This document shows positions 8 to 62,369 of a stretch of 64,000 nucleotides of DNA, piece after piece. The position numbers were made by a program, and so were the translations under genes. How positions within the stretch are numbered: position 1 is the stretch's first letter; every line of letters begins with the position of its first letter. Under the pieces are notes generated by a model, which was given only the letters and a program-made list of their open reading frames with translations, did no database searches and was not told where the DNA came from. The stretch spans positions 186,001 to 250,000 of the forward strand of contig NIVC01000108.1 in assembly GCA_002269645.1 (NCBI GenBank), in the 5' to 3' direction. Origin of the DNA: Macrostomum lignano (Eukaryota).

Positions 8-2013
<2,006 letters not shown>

Positions 2014-5772: not shown

Positions 5773-7170
5773 ATGGCGCTGCTCCCAGACCTCCGCTCCG
5801 GCCCGCTGCTGGACGGCGAGGAATTTCAAATTGACAGCGACAGCGAGAACGGCGACGCCGACATCCCGACGCCCTGCGCGACGCCCACCGGGGAGGAGGG
5901 CGAGGCGGCAGCTGAGCCTCGCCGAGGCCTCCTGGGCCGCATCGCCTTCCTGGAGGCGGAGGCCGAGAAGCTCATTGAGCACAGCCGCGGCTGCCGCGGC
6001 CACGCTGATGAGATGCAGTCCCTGCTGGCCCGGCTGCACGACCAGAAGGCCGCCCTGCAGCGCCTGCTGGGAGCCGGCGACGCTGGTCCCGAGCTCGATT
6101 CCTGGGAGGAACCCTGCGACCTGACCGAGCACACGGCTCGGGCCTACCTGCAGTGGCTGCGCCGCCTGCTGCACGACCTGTCGCAGGCGGTGGACCAGGC
6201 GGCCAGCGGGGCCGTCCTCGCTTCCGCCAGTGCCGCAGGCGCCACCGCGCCCCGCCTGAGCGGCCGGCGTCGGCGAGACGCGCCCAGCCGGATCTTCCCG
6301 AACCTCGAGGCGCTGGACATCGCCGCTGTTGACAATGGATCCGGCGACGTCTTTCATCAGCCTGGCGAGGCCGGCGACTTGCGCGACTCGCCGGGCGAGG
6401 GCGGCACCGGCTGGGAGCCGCTGCCCCGCCAGGCGCTCTACTGTGTGGTTGGCGACGCCCGCCGCGTCACCGTCGTGGGCCTGGGTGGGCAGCTGCTAGC
6501 GCGGACGCGGCTGCGCGGCGGCGGCTGCGACGAGCAGGAGGCGGAGGCGGGCAGCAACCTGGAGCGGATCAACTATCTGCGCTGCTCCGGCCGGCTGCTC
6601 CTGTCGGACAACCAGAGCCTGTACATCTGCGACCGCTGCTGCCGCGTGCTCCGCTGCCTGCACGGCTTCAGCTGGGTTGTTGGGCACTGCGTTGACGAGC
6701 CGGCCGACCGGCTGTACATCGTGGACCGCGTCAACGAGTTCTTGTCCGTGTACGGCCTGGCCAGACTTGGGGAGCTCGACCGCCTCGCTCACCGCGACTT
6801 CACCGACGGCATCAGCTCGGTGACGGCCCTGGCCCGCACTCTGTTCGTTGCCGATCGCGGCGCCAACGCCATCTTCGCCTTCGAGACCGAGTCGCTGCAG
6901 CTGGCCTTCCGGGTGCCGCTGCGAAGCCCGCTGTTCATCACTTCAGACTGGCGCGGCGGCTGCCTCTACGTCACCGTGGGCGGCCGGGACAACACCGTGC
7001 GGATGCTGGACGGCCAGGGCCAGCTGCGCCGCTCCCTGTCCGGCGGCCGCGGCTCGCAGCCCGGACAGTTCGGCTCGCCTGGTGGCCTCACCGTCTCTCT
7101 GGACGGCACGGAGCTGTTCGTGTGCGACCTGGACAACCGGAGGGTGCAGGTGTTCGGGCTGGGGGGCTGA
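5773..7170 (+). CDS. Intronless NHL-repeat (beta-propeller) protein with an N-terminal acidic and coiled-coil region, 465 aa
   Basis: accATGG start, GC3-rich codons, NHL signature GQFGSPGGLTVSLDGTELFVCDLDNRRVQVF plus degenerate repeats (LYIVD, LFVAD, LYVT). No RING or B-box seen. Confidence 0.85.
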   Translation: MALLPDLRSGPLLDGEEFQIDSDSENGDADIPTPCATPTGEEGEAAAEPRRGLLGRIAFLEAEAEKLIEHSRGCRGHADEMQSLLARLHDQKAALQRLLGAGDAGPELDSWEEPCDLTEHTARAYLQWLRRLLHDLSQAVDQAASGAVLASASAAGATAPRLSGRRRRDAPSRIFPNLEALDIAAVDNGSGDVFHQPGEAGDLRDSPGEGGTGWEPLPRQALYCVVGDARRVTVVGLGGQLLARTRLRGGGCDEQEAEAGSNLERINYLRCSGRLLLSDNQSLYICDRCCRVLRCLHGFSWVVGHCVDEPADRLYIVDRVNEFLSVYGLARLGELDRLAHRDFTDGISSVTALARTLFVADRGANAIFAFETESLQLAFRVPLRSPLFITSDWRGGCLYVTVGGRDNTVRMLDGQGQLRRSLSGGRGSQPGQFGSPGGLTVSLDGTELFVCDLDNRRVQVFGLGG

Positions 7171-38208: not shown

Positions 38209-41200
38209 TCAGTAGTAGGTCTCCCTCTCCAGCCAGTTGCCGGGCGGCAGGCGGCGCAGCAGAGTCTTGCGAATCTCGTCATAGGTGAAGATGGCCACCG
38301 AGAAGGGCAGGGCGGGCAGCCACCAGGTGAAGCGCATGGGCTGCATGCGCAGGGCCTTGTCCAGGCCGGGGCAGTAGGACATGAAGGCGGCCAGGGTGGT
38401 CTCGAAGAACAGGCCGAAGGTCATGTGGTGATTCCACATGCCCTGCTGGAAGATGGAGTTCTTGCGGGTCTTGCAGATCAGCAGGTCGGTCCACTGCACG
38501 ATCACGATGCTGGCGAAGAAGGCCGTGTGGCAGGTGTACTCCAGGCGCTTGCGCTGGGCGTAGGTCTGCGGGCGGGATGGGGCTCTGTGAGACAGACAGA
38601 CAGACAGACAGACAGATAGACAGACACAGACGAACAGGCTAGCGCAGACAGGCCAGCGCAGACAGACAAGCGCAGACAGGCACTAACCCATTCCTGTCCA
38701 TAGCTGTCCTCCAAGTCGTTGACCCCCTCGCTGTCCCACTCCTTGCGCAGGCCGAGCAGGCGGGAGGGCAGGAAGCCGTTCTCGGCCAGGATGACAAAGT
38801 ACACGAAGAAGCCGCCGCTGGCCTGGATCATGCCGATCTGGCCGTAGGCCATGCTGATGAGGCGCTCGTTAACCAGATTGTCGTGCTGCGGGTCGCGCGG
38901 CCTCCTCTTCATGATGTCGCTCTCGGCCTCCTCGTAGGCCAGGGAGATGGCGGGCACCATGTCGGTGCCGAGGTCGATGCACAGGATGGTGATGGTGCCG
39001 AGAGGCAGTGGCACGTCGGCCAGGATGAACAGCAGGAAGGGCGAGATCTCCGGGATGTTGGAGGTCAGCGTGTAGGCGATGGACTTCTTCAGGTTGTCGA
39101 AGATGATGCGGCCCTCCTCTACGCCGGTAACAATGGACGCGAAGTTGTCGTCAAGGAGAATCATGTCGGCGGCCTGCTTGCTGACGTCGCTGCCGGCGAT
39201 GCCCATGGCGACGCCGATGTCGGCCTTCTTTAGCGCCGGGGAGTCGTTGACACCGTCGCCCGTGACGGCCACGATGGCGCCCTGGCGCTGGCAGCCCTCC
39301 ACGATGATGAGCTTCTGCTGCGGGCTGGTGCGGGCGAACACGATCTCCACGTGGTGGCGCAGGATTTCGTCAATCTGGGCCGGGGTCATGTCGCGCAGGT
39401 CGCTGCCGTGGACAACGCAGGCCTGGGCCTCGCGGGGGTTCACCATGGACGGGTCCATGTTGCGATCCTTGGCGATGTCCTCGACGGTCTTGTTGGTCGG
39501 GCTGATGATGCCGACGCCCTTGGCGATGGCCTTGGCGGTGATCGGGTGGTCGCCAGTCACCATGATGACCTGCGGCGGGCGGAGAGTCGGTGAGCCGTCA
39601 TCAGCGAAGTACGAGATTCAGGAGTTGATGAGTCATCGGGATTCACGGGTCAGACGTCCCGAGTCCTGGGTCAGGATCCAAGAGTCGTGGGTCTCCAGGA
39701 TCCAAGGGTCAGGATCCACGAGTCACGGGTCAGCAGAATTTAAGGGTCAGGATTCAAGAGTCGCGGGTCAGCAGGATTCAAGAGTCACGGGTCAGCAGGA
39801 TTCAAGAGTCGCGGGTCAGCAGGATTCAAGAGTCACGGGTCAGCAGGATTCAAGAGTCGCGGGTCAGCAGGATTCAAGGGTCAGGATACAAGTCACGGGT
39901 CAGCAGAATTCAAGGGTCAGGATTCAAGAGTCACGGGTCAGCAGGATTCAAGAGTCGCGGGTCAGCAGGATTCAAGGGTCAGGATTCAGGGGTCAGGATA
40001 CAAGTCGCGGGTCAGCAGGATTCAAGGGCCAGGATACAAGTCGCGGGTCAGCAGGATTCAAGGGTCAGGATACAAGTCGCGGGTCAGCAGGATTCAAGAG
40101 TCGCGGGTCAGCAGGATTCAAGGGTCAGGATACAAGTCGCGGGTCAGCAGGATTCAAGGGCCAGGATACAAGTCGCGGGTCAGCAGGATTCAAGAGTCGC
40201 GGGTCAGCAGGATTCAAGGGTCAGGATACAAGTCGCGGGTCAGCAGGATTCAAGGGTCAGGATACAAGTCGCAGGTCAGCAGGATTCAAGGGCCAGGATA
40301 CAAGAGTCGCGGATCAGGTATAGTGGGCCCAGCTTGACCCACCTTGATACCGGCGGAGCGGCACTTCTCCACAGCGTCGGGCACGGCGGCACGGGGCGGG
40401 TCGATCATGGACATGAGGCCCACGAAGCGCAGGTTCATGAGCGGGAAGTTCTGCTCCTCGGGGTCGAAGGCGTATCCGTCAGCGTACTCCTCAGCGGGCA
40501 GGCGGAAGTCGCAGAATCCCAGCACCCGCTCGCCCATGCCGCCGAGCTCCTCGTAGGCGGTATTGAAGGCGCTCTTCCACTCGTCGTCCATGACGACGTC
40601 CTTGCCGTTGATGAGGATGTGTGAGCAGCGGTCCAGGATGCGCTCGGGGGCGCCCTTCATCACCAGCAGGAAACGCTTGTCTCCATCGTCAGTCTTGTGG
40701 ATGGACACCTGGTACTTGTTGGTGCTGTTGAAGGGCACTTCGCACACCTTGGTGTTCTTCTTGCGGTACTCGCTGACCCCGCCGATGCTGAGCTCCACGC
40801 ACTTGAGCAGGGCGCTCTCGGAAGCGTCGCCGTTGCACTCGCGCTTGAGCACGGGCTTGGACTCCTCGCCGGCCTTGAACTCGGCGCGGTTGCACAGCAT
40901 GGCGCAGCGGCTCAGGGCGATCCACTCTGGCGATGACTTGTTGTACTCGGCCGTGTTCTGCTCTTCAGAGGTGTCCGCCTCCAGGATGCGATTGTTGCAC
41001 CACATGTGGGCCACGGTCATGCGGTTCTGCGTCAGGGTGCCTGGGTGAGGGAATGCGCGGGTTGGGCTCTGTGATGCTACTGTGAGTAGTGCAGGTCAAT
41101 AGCTCAGCTTCAATACTGCAGCCAGGTGAGGTGATAATGGTGTCTAAAGCCGGGGAAAAGGAGTTGGCAATCCAGAATCTGGTGCTGGGTCTCCATGGCT

Positions 41201-47200: not shown

Positions 47201-48435
47201 TTGAATTAGAAAAGATAAATTTTATATTAAGTAATTTACAAATAATACTCTTTAAGTGCAAGATTTAAAAAATGTTATAGTCAAAATAAAAAACATAAGC
47301 CTTGGGCTTGGCTATAACAATATATTGACCCTAATATAAACAAAAAATAACAAACTAGATATTAAAGGGTCAAGAACTAAAGGACACAAGGTACTTAATG
47401 TATTTTAGCAAAAAGTCAAATAGTTTTATCTAATAATTTCTGTAAGTTAAGATTAATTTCTTATTTTTATAGGTATTAGATACCAATTTTTATCTTTATA
47501 ATTATATTACTAATATAATGTGAGATTCCTATCTATGAAAATGTCTTTTTATAAGTATATATAAAGTACTATACAATAAAATAGCTTAAATTAAAAAAAT
47601 TAAAAAACAAAATGCTATTTCTATTGAGGATAAAAATTTAGAGTCTTTCATCATAATTTGTTTTTACGACTTAAAATATAAATCTTAATTAGTCTAAAAT
47701 ATTAATATCAATGACAATCAAAAACATTATTATTTTTTATCAATTGAGCAAATGTAACAATTAATATTAATGATAAAAAGTTATTAAAAAGATAAAATTA
47801 TCTTATACAAATAAATATTTTTAAAATATAAAATAAATTGTAAACTAGGCATAGGTCTATATTTAAACAATTTTAAAATTTAATAGACTTATCTTTAAAC
47901 ATAAGACTTTCACTTTTTATAAAACTAATGTTATAATATAATAATACAAAATGTACTTTAATCTTATTTTCTAAAAATAAAACTCTAGTTTGATAAATTA
48001 TTAAACATTTTATCATTATTATAACAATGCAATCAAATATACTTTCAGCCAGAAAAAAACTTTCTCACAGCTTATGGCACACTAACTTTAAGTTTAAGTA
48101 GGGGCCTACAAAAATTATATACATTGTCCTAACTAATGCATGGCTATGACCTGCTAGAGGCAGTAAACTTGAAGAAGTCAGATATGAATCATATCTGAAT
48201 CATACCATAACCCATGCTAAAATATAGTTTAGAATGTCTACAGAAAACGAAAGATAAGTTTCAAATGATTTACGATCAAAGAAAATTGGTCCCTAGAGGC
48301 GATTTTCCATAGGAACTGCACTTCGCCGAAAAAATAAAATGAAAGTCTCATTTGGAATTTAAGGCAACTAAAAGTTGAGTATTTTGATGAATAGTGTTAG
48401 ATCAAAGGTAATAAATAACTTACCTCATCAGCCAT
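38209..48435 (-). CDS. ATP1A: Na+/K+-ATPase alpha subunit (P2C P-type ATPase), complete, 7 exons, 1007 aa
   Basis: Exons 48424-48435 (MADE), 46845-47138, 46109-46508, 42021-42401, 40343-41040, 38688-39569, 38209-38565 (3024 nt, all phases chain). Motifs [56 protein letters not shown]-terminal RETYY. AATAAA on the minus strand at about 38106-38111. Confidence 0.98.
38588..38680. repeat. Short degenerate (AGAC)n in Na/K-ATPase intron 6
   Basis: Direct reading. Confidence 0.8.
39650..40312. repeat. Composite minisatellite (24-bp GGGTCAGCAGGATTCAAGAGTCGC plus 14-bp GGGTCAGGATACAA variants) in Na/K-ATPase intron 5
   Basis: Direct reading. Confidence 0.93.
41572..41950. repeat. 24-bp minisatellite CAAATCCTGACACCCTCTTGACTA in Na/K-ATPase intron 4
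   Basis: Direct reading. Confidence 0.96.
42466..43140. repeat. 22-bp minisatellite CAGACTACAGTACAGAATCTGC (some units carry a 4-bp insertion) in Na/K-ATPase intron 3
   Basis: Direct reading. Confidence 0.96.
45557..46078. repeat. 29-bp minisatellite GGAATCTCAACAGAGATTTTGCATCCGCG in Na/K-ATPase intron 3
   Basis: Direct reading; internal hairpin AATCTC-AACA-GAGATT. Confidence 0.96.
46548..46755. repeat. 44-bp repeat, about 4.7 copies, in Na/K-ATPase intron 2
   Basis: CTAGCCAGCAGCATAGGAGAGATAGGACTCAATTAAACACATAT. Confidence 0.93.
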
Positions 48436-49396
48436 GGTGCCGAAATTGACAACTAACTCGTTTACTTTGAAACTTAGCAGCCGCTGCTCTGTTGACAAGT
48501 TAGAATTGTGAAAAATTAGTGGGTTTGTTTTTACAAGTTCGTAATCGCGCTCTCCCAATTAACGACCTAAAGTTGTGCTTTGCATCGTTAAAAAACCCGG
48601 AGAAAACCGGCTTTTCCAATCTCATTAAAATGCCAGTTTTTAGATTCTTTTTAGATCCTTCAATACCAAGGTGACAATTAATTGTTTTTCATAAATTTAA
48701 GTAAGTATTCTATGTCAGTCGAAAAATATCAAAATTCTCTATTATTTTACATTAGTTGTCTGTTCTTCTATGCGCCTGCACTGCCTGCATGGTTTTCATT
48801 AACATTGCTGAAGAGTTCACTGTTCCAAATATCTGAGCTTCAATCGTGCACTTTCAATACTTACTTTTCATTTTAGCTTCGTCATGCTCAACCCAAACTC
48901 GATCTAACCAATTGGGTTTGATACTTCTCTTCTTCTTCCATGTTGCTGCCTCAAGTCAAATTAAGCTAATTGCATGAATTGAAAAAAATGTTGTGCCAGG
49001 GTTTGCCTAATGTACATAACTGGCATTAAAAATCCGTGGCCAGTAAAACCACTACTCTTCCAGGACGCAAACTCAACGAAATGCGATGGTTGCTCCTACC
49101 GTGGCTTTTGCTCATTCAAAACTTCCTTTAAATTTATCGTCCGCTGGGACAACAATTGAATACATGTCATTGTAATCAGTAATTTTTTCATCCCTGGATG
49201 CCAAATAGAGGGCAAAATCGGTATAAAAAATGCTTTGATAAATCGGATATTTTTTATTGGACTTTGCTGAGGCTTAATTGTCAGCAGCGCGCTCAGTCCT
49301 GTTACCATACTCCAGCTCCCCCTTTTTTCCTATACTCATGGCATTTATCACCTTGAACCGCTTCTGAAACCAACCCAAATTGCTGGTCTGCCAGAA

Positions 49397-53863: not shown

Positions 53864-54383
53864 AAATCTGAGTGACAAGACCAAAATCTGAGGGACAAGA
53901 CCAAAATCTGAGTGAAGAAGACCAAAATCTGAGTGACAAGACCAAAATCTGAGTGACAAGACCAAAATCTGAGTGACAAGACCAAAATCTGAGTGACAAG
54001 ACCAAAATCTGAGTGACAAGACCAAAATCTGAGTGACAAGACCAAAATCTGAGTGACAAGACCAAAATCTGAGTGACAAGACCAAAATCTGAGGGACAAG
54101 ACCAAAATCTGAGGCACAAGACCAAAATCTGAGTGAAAAAGACCAAAATCTGAGGCACAAGACCAAAATCTGAGTGACAAGACCAAAATCTGAGTGACAA
54201 GACCAAAATCTGAGTGACAAGACCAAAATCTGAGTGACAAGACCAAAATCTGAGTGACAAGACTATAATCTGAGTGACAAGACCAAAATCTGAGTGACAA
54301 TACCAAAATCTGAGTGACAAGACCAAAATCTGAGTGACAAGACCAAAATCTGAGTGACAAGACCAAAATCTGAGTGACAAGAC
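53864..54383. repeat. 20-bp minisatellite AAATCTGAGTGACAAGACCA, about 26 copies
   Basis: Direct reading. Confidence 0.97.
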
Positions 54384-54404
54384 TCAAACCCAGCAAGCCG
54401 CTTA

Positions 54405-54640
54405 CCTTGCTTGTCGCGCACAACTCCAAGATGCGGTCTCAGTTTTCTGCCTCGAACCGGGGCAGCCGAATATTCAGTCCCAGGCATCGCCCAGACCAAA
54501 TCCTGCGCCTCAGCCACTGGCCGCAGCGGCTCAGCCAATCACGTGACCGCGCCCCGATCTCCGCGGCAGGAATACCAGCCCGCAAACAATAAATTACTGC
54601 CGGCCAATTGGGCGGCCTGGCAATTATTGGCCAGAGAGGC
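54405..54640 (-). promoter_or_regulatory. Candidate promoter and first (5' UTR) exon of the neprilysin-like gene
   Basis: Strong minus-strand donor AAG|GTAAGC at about 54405. CAGCCAATCACGTGACC (CCAAT plus E-box) at about 54531-54547 and further CCAAT/ATTGG motifs up to about 54632. Matching acceptor CCCAG| at 52426/52427. Confidence 0.4.
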
Positions 54641-54814
54641 TTTTAGCATTTTCAATGGATCCAGCGGGCTGCACCACCCCCTGTTCCGGTGTAGCAACGT
54701 TATGGAACCTGCACTTTTGCTTTATGTCCCCAGCTTTGCTGACGGAAAAATGCTTTCACCTGCGGATGCCGGACCCCAACTAATTCTCGGAGCATTTGAA
54801 ATTTCACTGAGTGG

Positions 54815-55212
54815 GATTATTTAGTTCTGAGTGAGGATTGTTCAGGTCTGAGTGGGGATTCCTCAGCTCTGATTGGAGATTATTTAGTTCTGAGTGAGGA
54901 TTGTTCAGGTCTGAGTGGGGATTCCTCAGCTATGAGTGGGGACTGTTCAGTTCTGAGTGGGGACTGTTCAGCTCTGAGTGGGGACTGTTCAGGTATGATT
55001 GGGGATTGTTCAGCTCTGAGTAAGGATTTTTCAGCTCTGAGCGGGGATTGTTCAGCTCTGAGTGGGGATTGTTCAGCTCTGAGTGGGGATTGTTCAGCTC
55101 TGAGTGGGGATTGTTCAGCTCTGAGTGGGGACTGTTCAGCTCTGAGTGGGGATTGTTCAGCTCTGAGTGGGGATTGTTCAGCTCTGAGTGGGGATTTCTC
55201 ATCTCAGAGTGG
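54815..55212. repeat. 21-bp minisatellite TCTGAGTGGGGATTGTTCAGC
   Basis: Direct reading. Confidence 0.93.
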
Positions 55213-55570
55213 GGTTTTTAAATTTTAAAAGTCTGAATCTCGTGTGCTGCAGAAACAACAGAAGTCTCATTGTATTCATCAGAACTATAAGATTAATAAA
55301 CTTAAGCAGGTGTTACAAGACGGGGTCACCTTTCAGCATTGCTTTCAGATTCAATTAGCCCTCTGTCGCGTTTCTATAGGGAGGAATCTCAACTGCCTAC
55401 TCGTCAAAGTCAACCCAGCAACCCACGCACTCGCGCTGCTGCCTTCTGCCCCGATGAGACACCAGAGACTGGCTTGAGCTGGCTGTGGCTCAGCCGTGTG
55501 CAATCCGCAAGAATGCTGATCCTTTAATGCACCCGGCCCCCGCTCTGCGGCAGGGAGAGTAGGACAAGCG

Positions 55571-56140
<570 letters not shown>

Positions 56141-56459
56141 AACACACAAACAAAAAAGCGTGTTGTCAGGCACATCATTACTGTGTACATGTACGCTGGT
56201 ATACACAATGGCAACTGGTGCGAATCTTCAGAGGCTGAATGTATGGCCAATGCGGGCCAGGCAGGCAGGCCGCAGCCCGTATTGTCTACCCACCAGTCAG
56301 CGCAGCGCAGCTCCCATTGTCCATGGCGGCCGTCTTGCACGCACGCAGCACAATGGAATCGCCACGCGCCCACCCCATAGAGAGGCTTTCAATGAGAGTC
56401 CGGCTCTTTCGAAGCATCTTCGAAATTCTCCACTTGCTCAGTCCTTCGCAAGCAGTAGA

Positions 56460-58562
56460 ATGAGTCAGCTCGGTGCCCGGCCTCTGCTGCTGCTCAGCGG
56501 CCTGCTGGCGGCTCTGGCGGGTCCCGGCGACGCCCTGCTGGCGGCCATCTACAGGGGCGAGGAGGCCGGCACGGGGAGCCGCTTTTTAAGTGACCACGCG
56601 TTCTGCGTCAGGAGGAACAGAGTGGGTGAGTTTGGGACGGAGCAGTCAGGGATGAGCAGTCAGGGATGAGCAGTCAGGGATGAGCAGTCAGGGATGAGCA
56701 GTCAGGGATGAGCAGTCAGGGATGAGCAGTCAGGGATGAGCAGTCAGGGATGAGCAGTCAGGGATGAGCAGTCAGGGATGAGCAGTCAGGGATGAGCAGT
56801 CAGGGATGAGCAGTCAGGGATGAGCAGTCAGGGATGAGCAGTCAGGGATGAGCAGTCAGGGATGAGCAGTCAGGGATGAGCAGTCAGGGATGAGCAGTCA
56901 GGGATGAGCAGTCAGGGATGAGCAGTCAGGGATGAGCAGTCAGGGATGAGCAGTCAGGGATGAGCAGTCAGTCTAAATGCAAAGCCAGACTGAGAAGCAA
57001 GCAATTACCGTTGCTCGTACACTGCCTGAATCAGATTCACAGCAGAGCAACAGGGTCAAGCTGGGACAGGACTTTTATCAGATTAAGAACGTTTGCTCAG
57101 TGTCGGATTGCTTTCAATCAGAGGTCTCGAGAATTAAACTTGGAGGAGCTCCGCTAGTGAAAATCAGAATTGGACTGAATCCCAGTCATCAGGATCGCCT
57201 CTTCCACATGCCCCTTCCCCACAATCCTCTGGATCCCCTCTCCGACATGCCGCTTCCCCACAATCCTCTGGATTCCCTCTCCGACATGCCGCTTCCCCAC
57301 AATCCTCTGGATCCCCTCTCCGACATGCCGCTTTCTCACAATCCTCTGGATTCCCTCTCCGACATGCCGCTTCCCCACAATCCTCTTTATCCCCTCTCCG
57401 ACATGCCGCTAATCCCGCAGTCCCTGCCGTGATGCTGCAGTACGAAGACGGGTTTCATCAGGCGCAACATCAAGCGACCTTTTTTGAAGCGGCTTCAAAG
57501 CTTCGCGCCGTCATCCTGCCCGCCGAGGATGAGACTCTACTGCGGGACTTCGCCGAGGTTTTCAAAACTGCCGACCAGGCGAGCCGCCGGCGCGTGTTCA
57601 TCGGCGTCAGCCTGCGCCACTCCACCAAGCGCTTCACCGGCCAGCGCTTCCTCCGCATCCTGCAGCTGCTGGGCACCGCCTACTTGGACCTGCTGCTCGT
57701 CTCCGGCCGGCCGTGCGGCCACTCGCAGCGCGACCGGCTGGCCTGCGGGATGAACCGCCTGACGCCCGCCTTCCTGCGCAACTGGCGCACACTGCTGCGC
57801 CTGGCCAAGAAGCGCCGCATTCTCAACCTGGGCGTCCGCAACTACCCGCTGCCGGCGGTGGCGCAGCTGCACCGGATGTCCACTCCGGAGTGCCTCGACT
57901 TCCCCGGCCGGTCGGGCTGTCGCGCGCTGCTTCAGTTCGTTCGTCGGAAAGGCGAAAAGCCGACGGCGAAGGCTGCCAAGAAGAACAAGAAGATGCAGAA
58001 GAAAAAGACGCAGAAGAAGAAGACGCAGAAGAAGAAGACGCAGAAGAAGAAGACGCAGACGCAGACGAAGAAGCAGAAGCCGCGTAGAACTGGGAAGGGT
58101 CCGGTCAGCATGCACACCGCCTACTCCATGCGCCGCGCTGCCGGCAACGTCAACTTCCTGACTGTCATTCAGGCGGCGTTCAACCCGCATCACCGGCACC
58201 GGGTGCTGCGCCGTTGGTGCCACCAGCACTCGGTGGTTCTCCTGGCTGACGAAGCCCTTGGCGGGCCGCACGCACAGGAGCTGCTGACCGATGCCCGTCT
58301 GGTGCTGGCCGCTGCCGACGCCAGGCTGCCGATTCGAACCGCGATTTTGCACTGGGCACTGAAGAAACGAGTCGCCCTGGCCATCGCACCCGATGTGGCC
58401 CCCGAGTTTATCAGCGAAATGGGCGGTTTGGTGGGGGCTACGCAGCACTTAGCCGGAATCGATCGAATCGTCGAAAACGACATTGAAACGCGCTACTTCC
58501 TAGCATCGACAAGAGCTCGTACGCTGACGAAGGCCAGTCGTTGGGAGCACAACGAGCTTTAG
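56460..58562 (+). CDS. Aldo-keto-reductase-fold protein with a predicted signal peptide and a Lys-rich insertion, probably non-catalytic; 2 exons (56460-56625, 57421-58562), 435 aa
   Basis: Donor G|GTGAGT and acceptor CCCGCAG|TC, both phase 1. AKR landmarks SRRRVFIGVS (R..LFITTK), LQLLGTAYLDLLLV (L.RLG.DYLDLYLIH), WRTLLRLAKKRRILNLGVRNY (W.AME.LV..GK...IGVSNF), FNPHHRHRVLRRWC, ILHWALKKRV. Confidence 0.8.
56641..56968. repeat. 14-bp repeat GAGCAGTCAGGGAT, about 23 copies, in the AKR-like intron
   Basis: Direct reading. Confidence 0.97.
57204..57410. repeat. 39-bp repeat, about 5 copies, running into the AKR-like splice acceptor
   Basis: GACATGCCGCTTCCCCACAATCCTCTGGATTCCCTCTCC. Confidence 0.93.
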
Positions 58563-61175
58563 GAACTGTGGGCTACGCTATACTTTGATGACATTCTCGC
58601 CATGAAGAAACTCTTAGTCTTCGTTGCAAAAGCACATGTTGAAACAGCTTTCGTAGATTACCAGCGGGTTTCATTTACATCCTGTATGTACATGTGCATT
58701 CATTCGTGAACCTTTTGACAATTTGTGAGAAATTGCAAAATAAATGTGCCACAAAGCGTACTGAAAAGACTTGTGTTGCTACAAATTTTCAGTTGGTTTA
58801 ACTGTGCATATTTCTTTACTTACATTTTGGTTCAGCGCGGCGCTCTTACATGTGTGCCAATAGGTCATATGGAGACTCGATTCCTGCGATTCCTCGACTC
58901 CGATTATTAATTTGGGGCCTAATTGGAATCTCAGCTTGGGTCTGCTCGTACAATGGCTTTGATGGCCATCCCCAATTTAAGGCACTTTGAAGTATACATG
59001 TCCAACTAAAAAGTTAGGGTCGCTGTACACTCCTGTGCACGTGAGCTCGAGTGTGTGCCTAGCTTTAATTTAACTGCGTACGTATAATCCATTGCGATTG
59101 CATGTGCATGTACGTGCTTCGCTTGAGGGGGAGTCGGCGGAATAGGCAGTAATGCATCTCACTGGTTGTTTTAAAATGTCGCCTTAAAGGGTGCGCCAGA
59201 ATGTACATATGTACACAGCAGCTCCCATGCCTTCAACTAAAAAACCCATCGAGACTTATTGTACACTGAACCTGGAAGACTTTTACATTGCATGTATTTC
59301 GTCATACAATGGGTACGAAATTCAGCTCTGTGTTAATTCTAGGTAAATTCTAGTTACATTGACAAAAATCTCAGAAACTGAAATGTCCTGGTATGCTAGT
59401 ACTGTTTATAGTTTTATACAAACCTACGAGTTTTTAATGCAACCGTCAACAAGATACTATTGTTGCTCATGTCTTCCATTCTTATAAATTTCTTTTTTGT
59501 CTAATTTTACTTACTATTTTTACAAAGCGACTTTTAAAATTGAGCAGCGTACATGTGAAAATTACGCAGTTTATTTTACTGCTTAAAAAATTGTTCAAAT
59601 CTAACGCTATAACGAAAAAATATTTAAATGAAACAAAACCTTAATATAAAAAATTTTCTTTGTTTGTTCCACCCTCAGGAAGTCTGACTGTTTGCCTGTG
59701 CATGACTCGGACTGTATGCAACATTAATAGCCTTTCCATGCTAATGACAAGTTGACGTAAAGCCCTGCCCTAGGCCTGCTTAAACGAAGGTTAAACAAAT
59801 TGAGATTGAAATCATAATAGACCTAAATCTAAATTTTAATTTTTCTTTTCACTGTAAGAACGTTCGTTTCTGTTAAATTAACCACTAGGGCCTATGTCAA
59901 AATTCTGAGTTTTCTGTTAAGGCCCTCTTCATAAATGAGGCTAGGTCTAGGAGTAGGACTGACTAAAAACAAAGTTCTTAAAACAAAAATTTTCTTCAAA
60001 GGCTTATTTCAATGTGTTTAAAAAAAAACAGTTTTTAATGCATTGAAGCCCCTAACTATTGCTTATCAACATCCCCTTTAGGCAAATTGAAAAACAAAAA
60101 ATAAAGCCTCATATTCATGTAGATATCAGGCCTTTTAAGTTTTAGATTCTTTATCTAGTTATTATATTCAACATTTAATGGCTTTTTTCTTTCCTAATTA
60201 TTCTAAATTAATTATTATTATTAGATAATATAACACATTGTTTCTGTTGATAATCTTGAAAAAAATATATTGTACATTTTTTATTTTAATAAAAGTTCTC
60301 AGCCTAGTCTAGTTTTTGCTTAGAACCTTTTTAGAAGGTTTTTTGTAACAAACTTATAATGTAGGCCCCTAATAAATAAAACAGTTTAAAACTTAAATTA
60401 ACTAAATAGTAATTATATTCAATTTATTAATAAAGGAAATTTGTCTTACTTTTTAAACATTTAAGACATTGAAAATAATTTATAATTGGTTATTATTTAA
60501 AAAATAATTTTGGATTTTGGATTTTTATAGACCTTATAATAAGGCTTATTAAATTAAATGTTTTTTAGAATTCTAAAAATTCTTAAAAGTTAGTTTTTAT
60601 ATATTATATTATCTTCTATACATAGACATCTTTCTTAATTTATAACAATTTTTATTAATATATAAGTTTTATTTTAGTTTTTAAGTAATTTATAACAAAT
60701 GTTTTTTTGTTTATTACATTATTTTTAGGAATCATAAGTTAGAACTTTAAATAATATTTTTTAAAAAGCATTTTACAACATTATCTAACTAATTATCCTT
60801 GTTTTAAATAGTATTAAATATGTACTAGAAGAGTATATAAGTTATAATAATGGAAATTATAACTTTTATAGTAATTTTTTTGCTAAATATTCTACAGACA
60901 TTTATAGTAACATAGTTAAAATCATATGATTCAAGATAAATTTTTGGCAATAGAAACATACAATAGGCAAGTGCAAATTATATTGATATGGCAAAAATAA
61001 AATATATTTGAAATTGAATGAATGTGAAAAAATTCTCAATTTATTATTTCTAGATAATTTTGTTCCTAGTGTTTTTGTTTAAAATAGCTTTATTAATTGT
61101 AACACAAATTATATTTAAAAAAATTAAGTCAGAACAATTGTCAAATGTCCAACTCTTCATTGTGCATGCTCCGAG

Positions 61176-62369
61176 ATGGAGAAAGTGCCGATTGATGCCT
61201 CTGAGATCCTGATCCTGGCCTGTCCTCAGTGCCAGTTCATGACGCTGAAGGTGGCGTCTCTAGATGCCCACCTGAAGGAGCACAACTGCAGGATCCACGT
61301 GAAGCTGAACAAGTGCAAGCAGTGCGGCATGATCACCAACTCAGACAAGGTGATTGAGGAGCACTTGCAGATCTGGCACCCAAGCAAGGACGTGAAGGAA
61401 AACATTGCCATTGTGTTTGATGAGACTTACAACCAGGACAAGCCGGCTAGTGAGCCCAAGGCAGTGACGAATGCTGGTGGTGGTGGTGATGCTCAGAAGT
61501 CAGGAAAGTCGAGCATTGCTGGTCTGCCGCAGATCAATCTGCTGCAGCTGATGTACATGGCCCACGGACCTGTGGAGATCAACCTGCCTGGCAGTTACCA
61601 GCTGGACAGGACCAAGGACGGGGTGCACGCGTGCATCTCGTTCATGCCGAGCTTCTTGAACCGGACTGTCGGTGAGAACTTCATGGAGAGTCTGAAGCAG
61701 GATCTGTCGTGGAAGCAGCTGACTTTGACAACAAAGGACGGCAAGGAGCGTCAGGAGCCTCGCCTGACCTGCTATGTCGGTCCTGACTTTGAGTATTGTG
61801 GCAACAAGTTCGAGAACTGCAACGACTGGAACCCGAAGCTGAAGGATCTGAAGGAGATCGTAGAGAAGGCGGTTGGGCGGGAGTTCAACGCAGTGATTTG
61901 CTACATGTACCGCAACGGCAGGGACAGCCTTGGGTGGCACTGCGAGAAAGAGAAGCCGCTTGGTGAGCACCCGTACATTGCGGCTGTGAGTTTGGGCCAG
62001 GCCAGGTACTTGGAGTTCTCGAGAAAAGGGCGCGAGGATCGCTACGTGAGACTGCGCTCTGCTCACGGAGACCTGGTGGTCACGGAGGGCGCGATCGAGG
62101 ACCTGTACATCCACCGGATTCCCAAGGATCCGATGGCCCGTCGCACGAGCTACACGTTCTCATTCCGGTACATCAACCCGGTGAAGAAGGCGGAGGAGGT
62201 CCCGAAGGTCGCCGAGGCGCCGGCCAAGGCCGCCCCGGAGTCGTCGGAGAAGCTGGCCGAGGCTCCGAAGGCGGAGCCGGCTGCCACTGAGGAGACCTCC
62301 GCGACCCCGTCTGGCAAGAAGGGCAAGAGCCCCGGCCCGGTGGGCAGCGGCAAAGGCAAGAAGAAGTGA
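61176..62369 (+). CDS. Intronless fusion of two C2H2 zinc fingers and an ALKBH2/ALKBH3-type 2OG-Fe(II) oxygenase domain, with a Lys/Ala/Pro/Glu-rich tail, 397 aa
   Basis: CPQC-x12-HLKEH and CKQC-x12-HLQIWH. AlkB motifs QEPRLTCYVG, FNAVICYMYRNGRDSLGWHCE, IAAVSLG, HGDLVV, HRIPK, FSFR. GC3-rich codons. AATAAA at 62510. Confidence 0.92.
   Translation: MEKVPIDASEILILACPQCQFMTLKVASLDAHLKEHNCRIHVKLNKCKQCGMITNSDKVIEEHLQIWHPSKDVKENIAIVFDETYNQDKPASEPKAVTNAGGGGDAQKSGKSSIAGLPQINLLQLMYMAHGPVEINLPGSYQLDRTKDGVHACISFMPSFLNRTVGENFMESLKQDLSWKQLTLTTKDGKERQEPRLTCYVGPDFEYCGNKFENCNDWNPKLKDLKEIVEKAVGREFNAVICYMYRNGRDSLGWHCEKEKPLGEHPYIAAVSLGQARYLEFSRKGREDRYVRLRSAHGDLVVTEGAIEDLYIHRIPKDPMARRTSYTFSFRYINPVKKAEEVPKVAEAPAKAAPESSEKLAEAPKAEPAATEETSATPSGKKGKSPGPVGSGKGKKK

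Follow-up and report, generated by a model that had tools for sequence, protein, structure and literature searches.

What remains of an enzyme when its fold is inherited but its active site, cofactor clamp and cellular address are not? We met this question at positions 56460–58562 (+) of a 64,000-nucleotide (nt) stretch of the flatworm Macrostomum lignano genome (contig NIVC01000108.1, positions 186,001–250,000; hereafter the window). The locus is a two-exon gene whose joined frame encodes 435 amino acids with an isoelectric point (pI) of 11.1, and corresponds to Mlig017362, labeled "hypothetical protein, partial" by NCBI. A first-pass annotation, made from the letters alone, had proposed a secreted pseudo-aldo-keto reductase repurposed as an extracellular polycation. 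By descent the protein belongs to the aldo-keto reductase (AKR) superfamily but fails the family's catalytic tetrad, cofactor site and Pfam threshold, and it is best described, from its sequence features, as a pseudo-AKR of a subgroup marked by a signal peptide and a cysteine pair. On balance, we favor a predicted residence in the lumen of the endoplasmic reticulum (ER) over a role as an extracellular polycation.

AKR descent of the Mlig017362 protein is established by sequence comparison. The barrel landmarks read by the first-pass annotation are borne out by phmmer, by profile scores against shuffled sequences and by Foldseek, but Pfam is blind to them and deeper methods were needed. A Pfam scan of exon 2 did not detect PF00248 even at E ≤ 10, placing the protein below the curated gathering score of Aldo_ket_red, and we rejected its matches to PH_35, Piezo, Connexin and others (E ≥ 0.04) as low-complexity noise from the poly-lysine tract. 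Against 1.84e9 representative proteins, phmmer returned five matches: two M. lignano models and three AKR proteins. The latter reach whole-library E values of 3.7e-5, 5.3e-5 and 6e-4 and themselves match PF00248 with E values down to 1e-109. Matches in the PDB were weak (E 0.055–1.2); once the poly-lysine tract was removed, all six were AKRs and all were collinear. Against a custom hidden Markov model (HMM) of 49 ordinary AKRs, the protein reaches 31.4 bits, compared with maxima of 7.0 bits for 2000 global and 7.3 bits for 2000 local shuffles. Global hmmalign cannot bridge the insertion, and about 80 N-terminal residues stay unaligned even to the HMM of the closest clade described below.

The structure prediction called for by the first-pass annotation agrees with this descent. 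Guided by a 53-row AKR alignment, AlphaFold2 models the core with a predicted local distance difference test (pLDDT) score of 80–93 and seven confident strands, and strands 2–8 follow in barrel order as AVILP, FIGVSLR, LLLVS, LGVR, LTVIQAA, VLLAD and ALAI. When this model is searched against the PDB with Foldseek, the top 50 matches are all AKRs (E 5e-10 to 2e-8, target-normalized TM-score 0.5–0.7). The best solved matches in the superfamily are AKR5-type prostaglandin F synthase or 2,5-diketo-D-gluconate reductases (4fzi, 3wby, 4f40), Giardia aldose reductase (3krb) and AKR1B10 (4i5x). Like these AKRs, the flatworm protein keeps YLDLLL in strand 4, W177 in helix 4, LGVxN with Asn196 in strand 5, Q306 in strand 6 and LxW367AL in helix 7, within the (alpha/beta)8 order; unlike them, it has a predicted signal peptide, a 90-residue poly-lysine insertion, an HNEL end and a pI of 11. 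The modeled (alpha/beta)8 barrel is very likely, and assigns a fold to a flatworm "hypothetical protein" that lies beyond the reach of Pfam.

The residues that make an AKR an enzyme are gone. Ordinary AKRs are cytosolic NADPH enzymes, and we compared their conserved columns over 51 aligned AKRs. The catalytic Lys and His positions are both occupied by serines (Table 1). The substituted motifs read LPAED (88–92), GVSL (117–120), VSGRP (149–153) and IAPD (377–380), as the first-pass annotation had described for the first three along with the absence of IPKS. The GVSNF motif reads GVRNY, with Arg195 replacing a Ser present in 48 of the 51 AKRs, and SPLG reads EALG. Within IAPD, Pro379 stands where AKRs have Lys, Gly or Arg, and Asp380 where they have Ser or Thr. 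The region of the catalytic Asp and Tyr is too diverged for a single alignment, and we give two alternative registers. In the MAFFT alignment, Gln71 falls where Asp is expected and Phe76 where Tyr is. The model helix 69–83 and strand 85–89 instead favor pairing ILPAED with IDTAxxYxNE, so that Leu88 takes the place of Asp and the Tyr loop is deleted. Neither register would put an Asp or a Tyr at the strand-2 site. The tetrad is thus not intact, with Ser119 for Lys, Ser150 for His and no Asp or Tyr in place.

The conserved Asn196 (of GVSN), Gln306 (strand 6) and Trp367 (of LRW) are kept, and sequence comparison indicates an incomplete NAD(P)H-binding set in which Asn196 and Gln306 remain while the Ser, IPKS and SPLG are altered. 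Because the Lys, His and Asp/Tyr are missing and the IPKS clamp for the NADPH 2′-phosphate reads IAPD, the protein is in all probability a catalytically dead AKR pseudoenzyme. The case is a clear one of its kind, the catalytic and cofactor residues being lost while the barrel core is retained. AKRs in non-catalytic roles are known from the Kv-beta channel subunits (AKR6) and mouse RECON/AKR1C13, in which the barrel likewise serves as a binding or regulatory module; RECON, which binds cyclic dinucleotides, is represented among the Foldseek matches by structures 5uxf and 6m7k. Kv-beta and RECON keep the tetrad and the NADPH site and are cytosolic, whereas the flatworm protein has lost both and is predicted to be secretory.

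The closest relatives of this pseudoenzyme are AKRs with signal-type leaders. Cys154 and Cys164, in the loop after strand 4, are invariant in an alignment with six domains of amphioxus and algal relatives, are also aligned by a clade HMM, and would probably form a disulfide. The pair is absent from 50 of 51 other AKRs, the exception (P0049) itself carrying a signal peptide. These relatives also share with the flatworm protein a strand-6 motif, Q-x-x-F-[DN]-P. Branchiostoma XP_066296046.1 (P0003) and its paralogues P0008, P0010 and P0011 combine a signal-type leader, one or more AKR domains, a PQQ-like beta-propeller and a C-terminal KDEL; leaders of the signal type likewise open the protist protein P0049 and the alga-like P0004. 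Per-domain phmmer scores are 16.6–29.2 bits to this group and at most 9.0 bits to 48 ordinary AKRs, and identity to the group is about 20–22%. Membership is probable rather than proven, and the independent evidence on which it rests is that leader, Cys pair and KDEL-type end occur together. The amphioxus AKR domains keep Asp-Tyr-Lys-His and are fused to other domains, whereas the flatworm protein consists of one dead domain that carries a polybasic insertion.

The small set with signal-type leaders and the Cys pair comprises P0003, P0008, P0010, P0011, P0103 (Nematostella), P0102, P0049, P0004 and Cymbomonas KAK3243914.1 (P0005). One amphioxus member has an N-terminal cupin/JmjC-like domain. 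In the tandem-AKR proteins P0005 and P0004, the tetrad of the second AKR domain is partly lost; domain 2 of P0005 reads DLPAND, TAR and LLLISAPC, a resemblance to the flatworm sequence that may be convergent. AKRs with leaders and the Cys pair thus span amphioxus, a cnidarian, green algae and the flatworm, with KDEL-type ends in amphioxus. Since the ER lumen has its own NADPH pool, the intact relatives could be real lumenal reductases, and the flatworm protein their dead derivative. In the searchable literature we found neither a description of this set nor any study of natural AKRs that reside in the ER lumen and bear KDEL-type ends.

The leader of the flatworm protein is encoded by exon 1, and the gene model of the first-pass annotation proved exact in its start codon, both exons and the 56625/57421 junction (Table 1). 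Exon 1 is joined, as had been assumed, because all three transcript-based NCBI models of Mlig017362 copies (P0001, P0096 and P0097) use the identical junction ..NRV|VPAVML... The M. lignano annotation derives from transcripts guided by RNA sequencing rather than from ab initio prediction (PMC5730564), and Mlig017362 is transcribed and its intron spliced out. In the mRNA, the first AUG in frame lies at 56460 (MSQLG..). P0097 and P0001 read through the 5′ untranslated region (UTR), beginning NESPALSKHLRNS.. and KHLRNS.., and the tag "partial" arises because this UTR lacks an in-frame stop. The end of exon 1 (..AFCVRRNRV) probably corresponds to the AKR N-terminal hairpin.

The protein N-terminus reads MSQLGARPLLLLSGLLAALAGPGDA and, by inspection, has the n/h/c anatomy of a cleavable signal peptide, in line with the secreted-type leader first proposed. 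The predicted n-region MSQLGAR (+1) is followed by a 13-residue Leu/Ala h-region, PLLLLSGLLAALA, and a Gly/Pro c-region, GPGDA, with candidate cleavage after ALA20 or GDA25 and small residues at −3 and −1. No other segment of the protein is as hydrophobic (Kyte–Doolittle 11-mer mean 2.6 at residue 9). These features make entry into the secretory pathway probable.

At the other end, a feature absent from the first-pass annotation suggests where the chain would stay. The protein ends ...WEHNEL-stop, which fits PROSITE PS00014 (ER_TARGET), [KRHQSA]-[DENQ]-E-L. At average amino-acid frequencies, such an ending is expected by chance in about 1 in 2300 C-termini (~4e-4). Liver carboxylesterases end in HxEL, a non-KDEL variant. 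In reporter data, His at position −4 is as good as Lys, position −3 accepts any residue except Pro, and the RNEL of calreticulin-3 is an ER signal (Raykhel et al., PMC2140024). A literature search for HNEL returned only a poxvirus mention. The protein resembles the soluble ER residents retrieved by the KDEL receptor in its predicted signal peptide and C-terminal [KRHQSA]-[DENQ]-E-L; unlike the typical ones, which are acidic chaperones or enzymes, it is a polycation, and the likeness is one of targeting class rather than of homologous family. Because the HNEL end has its counterpart in amphioxus relatives that combine a signal peptide with KDEL, it appears somewhat likelier that the protein is retained in the ER or early secretory pathway than that it is exported. 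The HNEL end, the reporter data on His at −4 and the KDEL of the amphioxus relatives together leave the proposed extracellular polycation unsupported.

The poly-lysine insertion is present as it was first spelled out, KAAKKNKKMQ(KKKTQ)4TQTKKQKPRRTGKG, and forms only the center of an insertion of about 90 residues (209–298) that also holds Cys213 and Cys222. In a TIM barrel, the loop that joins helix 5 to strand 6 is on the side away from the active site. Its coding DNA contains a 15-nt tandem repeat, AGAAGAAGAAGACGC x 5.2, at 57982–58059. The number of KKKTQ units is four in the window and in UniRef A0A1I8H5F1 (P0098), three in copies g1 and g3, and about 2.8 in g2, which has an 18-nt deletion; length changes among copies and assemblies are always in frame. 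The tract looks like an (AAG)-rich coding microsatellite tolerated in a surface loop rather than a tuned functional module, and the locus is a clean example, in a neopolyploid genome, of such a repeat making a polybasic loop longer or shorter from copy to copy. The insertion had been taken as the source of the protein's basicity. This holds in part: the tract contributes +23, but the barrel without the insert is itself basic (net +23, 44 Arg, pI 10.8), so that the positive charge of the whole protein (net about +46) is not made solely by the repeat.

The window locus is one of at least three near-identical genomic copies of Mlig017362. Its protein is 95–100% identical to PAA90534.1, PAA59264.1 and PAA79603.1 (g1, g2 and g3, respectively). 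A homeologous locus on NIVC01002283.1 (L001) is 100% identical in exon 1, 98.2% in the intron (with 126 gap columns from differences in repeat number) and 99.3% in exon 2; it is syntenic with the window locus, as the same ATPase neighbor lies upstream of the L001 copy. Exon 2 differs by eight substitutions and an in-frame 18-nt deletion inside the lysine repeat. With only eight substitutions, the ratio of nonsynonymous to synonymous rates between the copies is uninformative. Model P0096 (PAA79603.1, g3) has a frameshifted C-terminus (..APDVAPSLSAKW..WWGLRST) that lacks HNEL, and the UniRef model of g3, P0099, is intact; this could reflect an error of assembly or else a real mutation that disables one homeolog. 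A splice variant in UniRef P0098 (..SRFL|IPAVML) uses a weaker donor that the transcript-based models do not use, and we rejected it. We also disregarded the name "DEAD/DEAH box helicase domain-containing" on P0002, an older model from this gene family that is full of frameshifts, and the names Peripla_BP_4 and Peripla_BP_6 on P0098 and P0099, for which there is no support. A tblastn search of the window with the protein found no further copies, and one with the tandem-AKR relatives uncovered no further AKR domain hidden upstream; the gene is therefore not a truncated two-domain AKR. We found no literature on Mlig017362 in the searchable record (an absence there that is no proof of novelty), nor expression data for it in the full text and supplements of the M. 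lignano papers searched.

In the model we favor, the signal peptide would bring the chain co-translationally into the ER and be cleaved near residue 20–25. The barrel would then fold in the ER, probably with the Cys154–Cys164 disulfide, and the KDEL receptor would read HNEL and return molecules that escape to the Golgi, giving residence in the ER lumen or early secretory pathway. Any role would probably be by binding and not by catalysis. At this charge, the protein would be expected to associate with secretory-pathway partners that are acidic or polyanionic; our confidence in any specific binding function is low. A more daring proposal, which we consider improbable, is that the protein is the dead flatworm member of an unrecognized ancient group of ER-lumenal AKRs whose amphioxus members bear a signal peptide, a disulfide loop and KDEL, its barrel re-used as a resident polycationic binder that helps to fold, neutralize or package polyanionic secretory cargo (adhesive, rhabdite or mucus) before export. 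The locus is of moderate interest, and would be of more if an ER-lumenal AKR group proves real and functional. Unless a function emerges, its practical value stays modest; M. lignano is amenable to transgenesis and RNA interference.

Several observations weigh against an ER-lumenal pseudo-AKR of this subgroup. The clade HMM scores the protein at 69.9 bits (shuffle maximum 7.5) compared with 31.4 bits for the ordinary-AKR HMM, but P0003–P0005 are the query's own top matches and the excess is partly a selection effect. An HMM built only from P0008, P0010, P0011 and P0049, which the query's phmmer had not picked and of which three are P0003 paralogues, gives 28.6 bits and so does not improve on the ordinary-AKR HMM. 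Nor is the structural match independent of sequence homology, because AlphaFold given only the six M. lignano copies and no AKR rows failed (pLDDT 34, unusable); residues 1–77 and 410–435 are not confidently modeled even with them, and strand 1 and the N-terminal hairpin are unmodeled. The leader was called by inspection, and retrieval of HNEL by a flatworm KDEL receptor is putative. Some variants that match the PROSITE pattern, such as SNEL, retain poorly, and HNEL does not appear in the text of that study (PMC2140024). ER-lumen residents are usually acidic, and one with a pI of 11 would be unusual. The phmmer search of the 1.84e9 representatives found no orthologue outside M. lignano. Finally, the eight exon 2 substitutions are five nonsynonymous and three synonymous, leaving recent purifying selection undemonstrated, and the annotated copy g3 is frameshifted near its C-terminus.

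Three other accounts draw on the same evidence. Export from gland cells as an extracellular polycation, in mucus, adhesive, antimicrobial or seminal secretions, would suit the signal-peptide-like N-terminus and the net charge, and KDEL-type proteins can escape saturated receptors while not all PROSITE-matching variants retain well (PMC2140024). M. lignano also has, according to titles and abstracts, many fast-evolving, lineage-restricted secreted reproductive proteins. The C-terminal HNEL and the KDEL of the closest relatives speak against export, as does the lack of N-glycosylation sequons in the protein, and the M. lignano literature searched yielded no expression or proteomic evidence for it; we regard export as unlikely. 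An N-terminus unused as a signal, with the lysine tract acting as a nuclear or nucleolar localization signal of a basic nucleic-acid-binding protein, would be in keeping with the resemblance of the KKKTQ repeats to classical basic nuclear localization signals and with the pI of 11, a value typical of proteins of the nucleolus or associated with ribosomes. The full n/h/c anatomy in the most hydrophobic segment, the Cys pair in common with signal-peptide-bearing relatives and the ER-retrieval motif make such a non-secretory protein highly improbable.

The gene might instead be a relic that is transcribed but has no function: an AKR duplicate decaying within a neopolyploid genome, whose frame stays open by chance and through GC-rich composition and whose poly-lysine tract is unconstrained repeat expansion. 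The missing orthologues, the g3 frameshift, the unstable repeat number and the five nonsynonymous against three synonymous changes all suit such a relic. Exon and intron divergence differ only marginally (Fisher p = 0.06), and the opposite strand of the GC-rich exon also holds long open reading frames (ORFs). Decay is harder to reconcile with a 435-codon frame intact across the spliced junction in several copies, with repeat-length changes that are in frame every time, and with GC3 far above GC2, as in real genes (GC1/GC2/GC3 = 0.65/0.46/0.81, resembling neighboring genes). The barrel core, Cys pair, signal peptide and retrieval signal are moreover kept at only about 20% identity to any AKR, and this points to selection on fold and targeting after catalysis was lost. 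We consider a relic doubtful, and an ER-lumenal pseudo-AKR remains the reading we prefer.

Table 1 Features of the Mlig017362 locus and adjoining tandem arrays (window coordinates; column counts over the 51 aligned AKRs).
Feature	Position	Strand	Remark
20-nt x 19 array	54000-54388		Tandem repeat
21-nt x 19.5 array	54807-55214		Tandem repeat
(GACA)142	55571-56138		Just upstream of transcript start
5′ UTR	56391..56459	+	Model starts ~56391 (copy g1), ~56412 (copy g2)
Exon 1 coding, 166 nt, residues 1-55 plus 1 nt	56460..56625	+	Donor GG|GTGAGT at 56626
Predicted cleavable signal peptide, residues 1-25	56460..56534	+	By inspection: hydropathy and (-3, -1) pattern
Intron GT..AG, 795 nt	56626..57420	+	Acceptor CCCGCAG| at 57420; CTAAT branch-like site 11 nt before AG
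14-nt x 23.7 array	56640-56971		In intron; perfectly homogeneous
39-nt x 5.6 array	57192-57410		In intron
Exon 2, residues 56-435 plus TAG stop	57421..58562	+	Encodes degenerate AKR (alpha/beta)8 barrel
Ser119 at catalytic Lys position	57609..57611	+	FIGVSL vs F-L-x-T-K-L; Lys in 51/51 AKRs
Ser150 at catalytic His position	57702..57704	+	LLLVSGRP vs LLLIHxP; His in 47/51 AKRs
Cys154...Cys164 pair, loop after strand 4	57714..57746	+	Common to signal-peptide-bearing AKRs
~90-residue insertion 209-298, between helix 5 and strand 6	57879..58148	+	Gap vs all AKRs and clade HMM
Polybasic tract, residues 237-282, net +23	57963..58100	+	Includes (KKKTQ)4
C-terminal HNEL plus stop	58548..58562	+	CAC AAC GAG CTT TAG; KDEL-type ER-retrieval signal
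Candidate polyadenylation signal AATAAA, AT-rich 3′ UTR	58739..58744	+	Identified by reading; 3′ UTR GC 0.38

Short tandem arrays lie densely around the gene and within it, at 54000–56138 and 56640–57410, and their unit numbers differ between the window and L001. A 23-codon upstream ORF, MRVRLFRSIFEILHLLSPSQAVE, lies at 56392–56463, its TGA overlapping the main start (ATGA); it is probably not used, because only 1 nt separates its AUG from where the longest transcript model starts at its 5′ end. A scan for bacterial promoters and terminators was empty, which is irrelevant for a eukaryotic gene. On the minus strand, exons of a P-type cation-transporting ATPase lie at 38505–39563 (−) and 47494–49171 (Pfam Cation_ATPase_C, HAD hydrolase). 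The downstream neighbor at 61176–62366 (+) is a 397-codon ORF for a 2OG-Fe(II) oxygenase (AlkB-like, PF13532; E 1.8e-13). Long ORFs at 205–2010 (+), 5773–7167 (+) and 39079–40320 (+) lie in GC-rich, repeat-like sequence with weak Pfam matches to the C_tripleX Cys-rich repeat, the NHL repeat and the collagen triple helix; the collagen-like frame, opposite an ATPase exon, may be spurious.

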